From positions 4,154,001 to 4,218,000 of the forward strand of contig CM106586.1 of the NCBI GenBank assembly GCA_048013815.1: a stretch of 64,000 bases of DNA, in the 5' to 3' direction. Of this stretch, positions 41,755 through 44,700 are shown one piece after another. Source of the DNA: Setoptus koraiensis. Taxonomy: Eukaryota; Animalia; Arthropoda. The position numbers were made by a program, and so were the translations under genes. How positions within the stretch are numbered: position 1 is the stretch's first letter; the number at the start of each line of letters is the position of its first letter. Below the pieces are notes generated by a model. It was not told the DNA's origin, did not search any database, and saw nothing but the letters and a program-made list of their open reading frames with translations.

Positions 41755-44700
41755 ATGAAGCGAGGCGATATTTTGTTAGAACGTAATGTAAATGATAATA
41801 ACGACGGCAACAACATGGACACTAATAATAATAACAGCAGCAACAACATTGACAACAACAACAACAACAACAACAACACCAGCAACGTCGCCGACAACAA
41901 CAACAACGACAGCAGCAGCAGCAGCATCGAAATCGATAGCAACAACAACAACTGCAGCGTCAATAATGAGCCAAACAACGACCACAACAACACTGGCAAC
42001 AACAACAGCGCCACCACCAATAACAACAACAACAACGGCAACAACAATGGTCAAAATCAGCAAGACGACGACAATGATAATAGCAACAATAGCACCAGTA
42101 GCAGCATCAATGGCGGTCAAGCGGCCACAAATTTAATTGTAAATTATTTGCCGCAATCTATGACACAAGAAGAGATCAGGAGCTTGTTCTCATCGATTGG
42201 CGAAGTTGAGTCATGTAAATTAATCAGAGATAAAACAACTATTGGCCAATCGTTAGGTTACGGTTTTGTTAATTATGTCAGACCGGAAGACGCTGAGCGC
42301 GCCATAAGATCGTTCAACGGGCTCCGGTTGCAAAACAAAACAATCAAGGTGTCATACGCGCGCCCCTCTAGCGAATCCATTAAGGGCGCCAATTTGTATG
42401 TGTCTGGCTTGCCAAAATGCATGACACAAATTGAATTAGAGTCTCTATTTAAGCCATATGGCCGAATTATAACAAGCAGAATATTGTGCGACAATCTCAC
42501 TGGCCTGTCTAAGGGCGTGGGCTTTGTTAGGTTTGATCAGCGTCACGAGGCCGAGAAGGCCATTGAACATTTGAATAATACTCCCATTAGCAACGTCACT
42601 ACAAACAACCAAACAATAAGTAACAACAGCTCCCAATTGTCAGCCAACAACAACAACAACAACAACAACAACAACAACAACAATAATAACTCGTCAGCTA
42701 ATCAATTCAACAGAAGTGATTCTCCAACTAATTCTACAACAACCGACTCAGGCTCAAATGGTGCTACAAATTGCATAATTGTTAAATTTGCCAACTCACC
42801 TTCAAGTAACCCCCAGAAGCAGGCTGCGGCGGCAGCACTAGCGGCCGCCTCTGCCCTCATCAACCCGGTAGGCACGGTCACGCCCACAGGTGCCGGTCTG
42901 GCCGGGCCGCTGGCCGCTCAGAGTGCGGCCGCGGCCCAGTCGGCCGCTGCCGCAAACGGGGCCGCTCTAAGCGCCTATCTGTCTCATCATGCGGTCGCTA
43001 ATACGGCTGCGGCCGCGGCCGCTGCGGCAGCCGTTCAACAACAACAGCGCCGTCTATCATCAGGACCCATATATCACTATCCCGCCAACAGATTCAGGTA
43101 TATATCAGCCTCGTCGATGGCTACAAACCACAACCACAATCACCACTCTCACCACCACTCTATGAATAAATCCTCTCCCATGTTAACGGGCACCGGCGGC
43201 GGGCCCACTGTTGTCGCCAACGGCGTGGCCTCGGTCGCCCAGCAGCAGCAACAGCCCACTTCCGGCGCCGCCGCCGTCGCTAATAATATTATTAATAATA
43301 ATAGTATTAATAATAATGGCAACCCAACACATACCACCAACACTACTACTGCCAGCAATCATAATAATAATAATAGTAATAATCATCACAGTCATCACGC
43401 GGTGCCCATCAGCGGCCACCATCAACCGCACCAACACCATCCAAGTAATCATCATCATGCCCATCATGCGCATACCGTTCAAACTAACGGTGTCCATCAT
43501 GCGCAACAACAACAGCAACAACAACAGCACAACAACAACAACAACAACAACAATCAAGCCGTAACAACTGTTACGTCATCTCAGATACCCACCTTAGTAG
43601 CACCCGCTCCATATGCAACGCCAACCACAATAGCGCCTTCCAATCACATTCATCACCAGCATCAGCAGCAATTGAGTCACCATCAATTGTTGTCACATCA
43701 ACAGCATCACCAACAACAACAATTATTGTTGCATCATCATCATCATCATCAACAACAACAACAACAACAACAACATCATCACCATCATCACCAACTGGCC
43801 AGTTCGCCGGCCAATCCCGCTGTTGCCCATCAATTGGTTAGTCCAAGCGCCGCGGCAGCCGCTGCGGCCTGTTATTACATATACGACGTGCCCTACATTT
43901 ATGGTATCATCACCTGATTCATGTGGTATCATCAGCTGATTCATGTGGTATCATCAGCTGATTCATCTGGTGTCCTGGTCACCTGATTTATTTGGCGACA
44001 TCAGCTGATTGTGGCGGCCACAATCACAATTAACAGCTGACACAACAGCAAGCAACGACGAAATTAGCGAGATACAGACATTTGATAGTGACCACTTTAC
44101 ACTGGCAATCGTATCAATCGTGATGGTTACAGTATTGTTATTGTTGACAAATTGATGGGTCGCAATTCGTTCACTGACAGTTTAGTCAGTGGGCCGGCTA
44201 GCTTGCGTGCTTCCGGTTGCGCCATCTTGACGCGTTGGCCCATCATTAACCCGTTATTAGCATTATTATTCACACTATTGGACTATTGTGAGTTGTTATA
44301 CAATGTTGTTATTACGTGAGTTGTATATATGAGCACACCTCAACAACAGCAGCACCCCAAAACCGTAAGATAACATCAACACATTACATAAGCAAACAAG
44401 TGCTTCGTTATGCTGGTGATGGCGATGGCGATGATGATGATGATTGATTTTATTGATAACTACCGCTACTACTATTATTATTATCATTATTACTATTATT
44501 ATTATCACTATTATTGGTTGGTTACTACTATCATTACAATTACTTATTACTATTATTATTGTTATTATCATTATTCATACTTGATTGAGATAATGATTAG
44601 TTCCGTTGATTCCGTAGATTGATTGCCGCTCTTCCTGTTCTTCAATTAATTAGTAATCGTGGGAGCTTTGCACCAGTGCCAAGCCCTGATGAGCCAAGTG

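Follow-up and report, generated by a model that had tools for sequence, protein, structure and literature searches.

Can the beginning of an intron serve as an alternative C-terminal coding segment of an ELAV/Hu gene? The question is raised by a 64,000-nucleotide stretch of DNA from Setoptus koraiensis (Arthropoda; assembly GCA_048013815.1, contig CM106586.1, positions 4,154,001 to 4,218,000 of the forward strand), which was analyzed as a whole and is referred to here as the window. It contains an ELAV gene in which the open reading frame (ORF) of the first exon runs past the 5' splice site in the hinge, the segment between the second and third RNA recognition motifs (RRM2 and RRM3), and continues into the intron for a further 272 codons. 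An earlier interpretation made from the letters of the window alone, called here the sequence-only reading, saw in this frame the candidate tail of an isoform that lacks RRM3. Using related loci recovered from public assemblies, we find strong support for a coding tail, and we consider it likely that positions 43098-43917 are the coding 5' part of the gene's single coding intron, retention of which would give an RRM3-less ELAV.

The ELAV gene and the frame that reads through its hinge

Two RRM_1 domains were matched in exon 1 (Pfam, E 5.9e-40) and one at 45529-46113 (E 5.8e-22), and the order of RRMs in the gene is two, then the hinge, then one. No Pfam family beyond RRM was matched in the gene or its tail. 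The nearest named proteins are ELAV-like 1, 3 and 4, fne and Rbp9 of arachnids and other arthropods, with 80-87% identity across the RRM1-2 part. The gene is thus a member of the ELAV/Hu family. Its hinge intron, the only one that interrupts coding sequence, is bounded by TTCAG/GTATAT ... GAGCAGCAG/GTACTCG (here and below, a slash outside parentheses marks a splice junction). The acceptor side reads ..GAGCAGCAG/GTACTCGCC, with exon 2 starting at 45528, and an Arg codon is split after its second base to give RFR/YSPL. Conserved phase-2 junctions of the hinge, J6 and J7, have been described with an R-SP motif, and shifts of the 5' splice site are known there (PMC2529313); the junction in the window matches J6/J7 and carries the R-SP motif. 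The same phase-2 junction, RFR/YSP(L/M), is found in the four relatives, described below, whose sequence reaches exon 2. The spliced product would have 643 residues, a count made from the coordinates; the two exons were searched separately.

The ORF at 41755..43917 (forward strand, 720 residues) reads past this junction. As the sequence-only reading had stated, the frame runs on for another 272 codons past the conserved donor at 43097/43098 and closes with a stop codon at 43915-43917. Over the same stretch there are 0 in-frame stops versus 7 and 20 in the other two forward frames, and in the remaining part of the intron each frame contains 26-32. The chance of finding no stop in 272 codons is about 2e-5 from base composition, and none of 5000 mononucleotide shuffles was open (0/5000). 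Because such a test is lenient for a stretch rich in triplet repeats, the decisive evidence is conservation in relatives. The tail has a G+C content of 0.48, and the sequence that follows it one of 0.38. The encoded tail is 18% His, 14% Gln, 12% Asn and 11% Ala, with K+R and D+E both near 0; the poly-Q, poly-N, His clusters, Ala run and terminal letters (Y-G-I-I-T-stop) listed in the sequence-only reading are all present.

Conservation of the tail in related loci

With the RRM1-2/hinge part as query, seven proteins of 775-1100 residues were found in ENA, JGI and Logan assemblies. Their loci, on metagenome or Logan contigs, make up eight full loci together with the window; a ninth, partial one, fragment L009, came from an exhaustive profile search. 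Each of the seven relatives has a single ORF that reads through RFR/YIS. The tail is open for 272-610 codons in 8/8 full loci (401-610 in the seven relatives), with 0 in-frame stops versus 7-37 in the other frames, and L009 likewise has a homologous open tail. Conservation of the frame in relatives, which had been put forward as a check on the idea, was therefore found in 8/8 full loci and in the fragment. Exon 1 and the tail share one uninterrupted frame in each of the eight full loci, and RYIS is kept at the start of the tail, even though insertions and deletions are many.

The other end of the tail is equally fixed. The tails of the relatives all end in YYYFYDMPYYYGI(I/L)T (also written AYYYFYDMPYYYGI(I/L)T or, in part, ..AAYYYFYDMPYYYGI(I/L)T), and the window has a counterpart. 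The stop lies at the same codon across the loci and can be TGA, TAG or TAA. Directly after it, in all eight full loci, the G+C content is lower by 10-19 points and every frame contains stops.

Substitution patterns agree with this picture. The proportion of synonymous differences (pS) is at least 0.56 for every pair of loci, so that synonymous sites are saturated, and neutral sequence would not have kept the frame over such distances. For the final 19 codons the values are 0.76 for pS and 0.076 for the proportion of nonsynonymous differences (pN). Over alignable blocks pN is 0.30-0.53 in the tail versus 0.11-0.30 in the RRM core. The two most closely related loci have a ratio of nonsynonymous to synonymous rates (dN/dS) of about 0.37 in the tail and 0.11 in the core. 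On these measures the tail is faster evolving than the RRM core yet constrained. The comparison strongly supports the view that the tail is real coding sequence, under purifying selection across the whole clade and ending where the ORF ends; what chiefly carries this case is the C-terminal block free of repeats, along with the fixed stop and the open frames, the alignment of the low-complexity middle of the tail being uncertain. The central proposal of the sequence-only reading, a 720-residue ELAV without RRM3 made by read-through, thus stands in its coding part, with frame, motif and stop conserved and pN far below pS; the isoform itself stays a prediction, as do the regulated switch and the prion-like nature of the tail that the sequence-only reading proposed.

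The clade is most likely that of the eriophyoid mites. This placement draws on the giant single-ORF neighbors (including a trithorax-like ORF of 3447 residues), the loss of all other ELAV coding introns and the recovery from metagenome and Logan assemblies; the eriophyoid features used for comparison are those described previously (PMC7738191, PMC11879100, PMC11920263). A word-based search with the tail of one relative (P0003) returned only the same seven proteins. A profile of the last 120 residues, run against 1.84 billion representatives, found only this clade, plus a new fragment (P0121) and a spurious repeat protein (P0122). No usable match was found among ESM Atlas look-alikes of the tail end.

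Anatomy of the tail

In the relatives the tail is built of blocks in a constant order. It starts with RYISSSS at the junction, which is followed by AGSHSDRS..SSASS (rich in Ser), L-x3-M-x2-L-x-L, NGY and poly-Thr blocks, a Q/H/M-rich block (KQQQHAAAVVASQQQQALMMQQQQQQMMHHHMLAAA) and the invariant Tyr-rich end. The L-x3-M-x2-L-x-L block fits the class-1a pattern of nuclear export signals. The tail of the window is the shortest and keeps the Thr-rich, Q/H-rich and terminal blocks. The relatives' tails are rich in Ser, Ala, His and Gln and contain 2-6% each of K+R and D+E. An alignment of the last 120 residues of eight sequences (alignment A1) has 20 invariant columns. AlphaFold2 applied to this alignment predicted one long helix over the Q/H/M block and disorder elsewhere, with a mean predicted local distance difference test score (pLDDT) of 52, a low confidence.

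A 22-bp unit, TGGTATCATCA(C/G)CTGATTCATG, is repeated 3.2 times at 43902-43971. The first copy holds the last codons of the tail and its stop (Y-G-I-I-T-stop); tandem duplication has thus carried the end of the coding sequence into the part of the intron that is non-coding. The repeat was not seen at this place in the relatives.

The canonical splice path

The donor, cag/GTA(C/T)ATATC, is present in 8/8 loci. On a rough generic donor matrix, which is not specific to this genome, this proximal donor is weak (2.3-2.8 bits) and is the only phase-2 GT in each tail to score at least 2 bits. Five loci reach exon 2 (the window, L001, L002, L005 and L008), the other three contigs ending inside the intron. 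The acceptor (C/T)AG/(G/A) TAC TCN CCN is kept in all five, and RRM3 is nearly invariant across them and the mite Halotydeus destructor.

Upstream of the acceptor is a long zone without AG, listed for the window in Table 1 and extending over 592-627 nt in L001, L002, L005 and L008; base composition predicts an AG frequency of 0.033-0.042 per position. At the start of each zone is a cluster of CTTAC/CTGAC sequences that resemble branch points (45110-45150 in the window), and these repeats suggest a distant branch point. Halotydeus has an AG 50 nt upstream of its acceptor. The 60 nt preceding the acceptors are for the most part rich in A and C and contain no clear polypyrimidine tract. The acceptor of the window is preceded by tandem in-frame alternatives, and L001 and L005 likewise have AGs in tandem, at a spacing of 3 nt. 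Use of an earlier one would add Ser to the hinge; a tick protein (P0018) reads RFSRYSPL, and a Ser insertion at the hinge junction is known in other ELAV/Hu genes (PMC8553928). The published consensus of the conserved ELAV/Hu hinge microexon (bee 4c type; PMC8553928), (L/M)L-x-(I/V/M)-x2-5-G(V/L/I)-x-R, had no match in any forward frame of the intron in the window, the four relatives or Halotydeus. Because donor, acceptor, AG-free zone and RRM3 are all conserved alongside the tail, both outcomes of the junction, tail and RRM3 splice, appear to be maintained by selection.

Table 1. Positions in the window of the ELAV exons, the predicted tail and the elements of the hinge intron
Feature	Coordinates	Strand	Remarks
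ELAV exon 1	41755..43097	+	poly-N N-terminus, RRM1, RRM2 and first half of hinge; ends ..YHYPANRF plus AG of the Arg codon
Hinge 5' splice site, TTCAG/GTATATATC	43092..43106	+	phase 2; intron starts at 43098; also codes F-R-Y-I-S of the read-through
Predicted read-through coding tail	43098..43917	+	272 codons after Arg; stop TGA at 43915-43917
Best-conserved C-terminal part of tail	43558..43914	+	Q/H/L(M)-rich predicted helix block and invariant Tyr-rich end
Non-coding rest of hinge intron	43918..45527	+	1610 nt; G+C 0.38; stops in all frames
AG-free zone before acceptor	45110..45519	+	about 418 nt; no AG between 45109 and 45520
Tandem in-frame acceptors, GAG CAG CAG	45519..45527	+	last gives RFR/YSPL; earlier ones would insert Ser (RF-S-R-YSPL) or Ser-Ser
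ELAV exon 2	45528..46116	+	second half of hinge, RRM3, stop

Alternative explanations

Several points weigh against a tail that serves as the C terminus of an RRM3-less isoform. The tail consists largely of low-complexity sequence that is hard to align, and the tail of the window is without the middle blocks common to its relatives (SDRS..SSASS and L-x3-M-x2-L-x-L). The assignment of the relatives to a clade is indirect, and the strength of the donor was judged on the generic matrix described above. An exact-ORF look-up did not find the 720-residue ORF on record. With regard to the mechanism of 3'-end formation, the eight loci have no position-conserved AATAAA or ATTAAA after the tail stop; there are 0-2 such hexamers per locus, and the one in the window lies 1439 nt after the stop. 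Intronic polyadenylation is possible, though no conserved poly(A) signal lends it support.

A different explanation is that triplet microsatellites (CAA/CAG/CAT/AAC) at the start of the intron happen to be free of stops in one frame that is never translated. The stretch is indeed rich in triplet repeats, the tail of the window is mostly low-complexity, and other frames carry ORFs of 117-124 residues. Yet the same frame is open for 401-610 codons in seven species with saturated synonymous sites, near-identical strains being excluded by the pS of at least 0.56; a non-repetitive C-terminal motif and the position of the stop are conserved, with pN/pS about 0.1; and composition changes abruptly at the stop. 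We give the chance frame hardly any credence. A tail that is conserved as protein could in principle be a stand-alone product without RRMs, translated from its own transcript beginning inside exon 1 or at the start of the intron. This is very unlikely, as the loci share no Met close to where the tail begins, its frame continues that of exon 1 in 8/8 loci, and RYIS at the junction is conserved.

The remaining alternatives accept a tail joined to RRM1-2 and differ in the fate of RRM3. In the enlarged-hinge model, all or part of the tail would be an internal extension of the exon, spliced from a distal 5' site within the tail or at its end to the RRM3 exon, and no isoform would lose RRM3. The sequence-only reading had itself raised one form of this idea. 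The short extensions of Halotydeus and of a spider, which start with RYIP and are annotated as internal, lend this idea some weight, and the two sites named for it, a phase-1 donor G/GTATCA at 43904 and an acceptor ACAG/GT at 45546, do exist in the window and are in compatible phase. This pair was rejected for the clade, since neither site is conserved: the Gly codon at 43904 is GGA or GGG in 5/8 loci and offers a GT in only 3/8, and the relatives lack the second acceptor. Both the position of the stop and the three residues past the supposed donor are moreover conserved, with synonymous change, and no locus has a GT at or beside the stop. A further candidate is a phase-2 site resembling AT/GTATCA at the M-Y-H block of 5/8 loci (L001, L002, L004 and L008, with a poorer GTTCCA in L005). 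It falls in the same alignment column and is followed, like the main donor, by a Tyr codon, and its use would connect ..M with YSPM. The site does not occur in the window, however, and it scores below 2 bits on the same matrix. As no phase-2 GT in any tail matches the score of the proximal donor and there is no other conserved phase-compatible donor, we regard an enlarged hinge as improbable. About equally improbable is the converse, in which most or all of the product would be the tail form and splicing to the RRM3 exon would be rare. The weak score of the donor on the generic matrix and the acceptor without a polypyrimidine tract would fit such a situation, whereas the near-invariant RRM3, the conserved acceptor and the AG-free zone of 418-627 nt imply that the splice is used.

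Proposed mechanism and origin

Under the interpretation that we favor, a coding tail at the start of a facultatively retained intron, exon 1 would be a composite terminal exon in which the hinge donor competes with read-through. Splicing of the weak donor CAG/GTATAT to 45528 would give the canonical three-RRM ELAV of 643 residues. If the intron is kept, either by plain retention or by internal cleavage and polyadenylation, translation would continue for 272 codons and yield a product of 720 residues, consisting of RRM1-RRM2, half of the hinge, a disordered tail rich in His, Gln, Asn, Ala and Ser, and the invariant Tyr-rich end. Since this is the sole coding intron, the retained-intron mRNA would have no exon junction 3' of the tail stop, so it may escape junction-dependent decay and should be stable. 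We infer that both mRNAs are made and that their ratio is regulated.

The tail form would be without RRM3 and without the second half of the hinge, the region concerned with localization. That half has been tied to export and localization (PMC2529313), and two further reports tie RRM3 to multimerization and RNA binding (PMC2275111, PMC6344896). Self-association through the low-complexity sequence or the predicted helix might replace RRM3 multimerization in the tail form, and its localization might be altered. ELAV/Hu proteins are known to regulate intronic 3'-end choice as well as splicing (PMC8904962); that ELAV itself sets the choice at its own hinge junction is pure conjecture.

Sequences from other arachnids bear on the origin of the tail. 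In Halotydeus destructor, a non-eriophyoid mite (L010, GCA_022750525.1, 3578-3690), a proximal donor, TTCAG/GTATATA, is followed by 36 open codons (RYIPLSPMSRHF..) and by a distal donor, AGG/GTAGGC, that overlaps a stop. The annotated ELAV-like 4 model (P0087) uses the distal donor; the proximal one would give RFR/YSPL, and Halotydeus likely has two ELAV isoforms. A protein of the spider Oedothorax gibbosus (P0009) reads RFRYIPAVSPAVSSSRYSPL. A hinge extension that starts with R-Y-I and is produced by an alternative 5' splice site thus seems older than the clade of the window. The tail probably arose when this clade lost the distal donor and the ancestral arachnid extension (RFR-YIP..) grew into a long terminal tail. 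A broader scenario, which we offer tentatively and hold to be rather doubtful as a whole, is that a radiation of plant-feeding mites draws two ELAV proteins from one gene, that the surviving intron was spared, amid massive intron loss in the clade, as a switch, possibly one set by ELAV, and that the self-associating tail stands in for both the localization hinge and the multimerizing RRM3; nature would then have provided a conserved separation-of-function allele for RRM3.

Other features of the locus

Within RRM2, at 42580-42770, is a long Asn/Ser/Thr-rich insert with a run of about 15 Asn, located between ..HLNNT and ..IIVKFAN. In the relatives this position is occupied by another insert (NNTYIQIQNNTVNVSRQPP..), and in bees alternative exons are placed in the same RRM2 loop (PMC8553928). 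The stop codon of RRM3 is followed immediately by a G+C-rich 20-bp tandem repeat, GGGGCCGGTCGGCCGGCTGA, in 3.8 copies (46130-46205), which lies in the presumed 3' untranslated region. A search of 41000-47500 against Rfam gave nothing significant, the only match being a sub-threshold one of a microRNA model in a TAT repeat.

Upstream of the ELAV gene, about 28 kb (13716-41754) are without an ORF of at least 250 residues in an otherwise compact genome; this region possibly holds 5' exons or regulatory DNA of ELAV. It is preceded by an ORF of 1405 residues (9498-13715) with no Pfam match at E 0.001 or better. In the relatives a giant trithorax-like ORF lies 1.5-3 kb upstream of ELAV, and synteny with the window was not seen, the ORF at 9498-13715 being without a Pfam match.

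Significance

Earlier work had identified the hinge junction of ELAV/Hu genes as a place where alternative splicing is concentrated (PMC2529313, PMC8553928). A full-text literature search turned up hinge microexons, shifted splice sites, a Ser insertion and frameshifted bee isoforms; it found no ELAV/Hu isoform in which RRM3 is replaced by a conserved, intron-encoded tail, in agreement with the sequence-only reading, which knew of no described equivalent. ELAV/Hu proteins are central regulators of neuronal mRNA processing, and the roles of RRM3 (multimerization, poly(A)/AU-rich binding) and of the hinge (shuttling) are still studied by means of artificial deletions. If the tail isoform is real, an animal lineage uses an RRM1-2-only ELAV on purpose, with a different, selected C-terminal module. 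The defined tail and its 16-residue Tyr-rich motif would offer a handle for the study of partners, condensation and localization. In an intron-poor genome, coding content may explain why a particular intron survives. Gene models that allow one isoform will miss the other ELAV form in eriophyoid mites.

Comparison with known systems

ELAV-type proteins with two RRMs are known from other sources. Sex-lethal is a separate gene with two tandem ELAV-type RRMs, and a caspase cleavage product of HuR keeps RRM1-2. The predicted tail isoform shares with both an RRM1-2 core without RRM3; neither of them, however, has a conserved intron-encoded C-terminal tail rich in Gln, His and Tyr, and the HuR fragment arises by proteolysis.

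In the layout of the switch, the closest parallel is the immunoglobulin mu gene, where the secreted and membrane forms depend on a composite terminal exon at which splicing competes with polyadenylation. As proposed here for ELAV, the 5' splice site lies inside an exon and its use decides which C-terminal module is made. The window differs in that no intronic poly(A) site could be found, plain retention being equally possible, and in that its switch is a prediction.

Within the ELAV/Hu family, variants at J6/J7 of the hinge include microexons (bee exon 4c, the Drosophila fne mini-exon, human HuB-D), shifted 5' or 3' splice sites and a 3-nt Ser insertion (PMC2529313, PMC8553928). The window shares with these the phase-2 junction before R-SP and an intron that supplies coding sequence which would change a hinge tied to nucleo-cytoplasmic localization, and its tandem acceptor could likewise add a Ser. 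The described variants, however, are short internal inserts that keep RRM3, whereas in the clade of the window the extension runs to 272-610 codons, has a conserved stop and would entail loss of RRM3 and the second half of the hinge. In the extensions of Halotydeus and Oedothorax the read-through likewise starts with R-Y-I, and Halotydeus also has the same TTCAG/GTATATA. These extensions comprise only 13-36 residues and rejoin RRM3 through a distal donor, for which the clade of the window has no conserved equivalent; a hinge extension of this Halotydeus/spider type was probably the evolutionary precursor of the tail.

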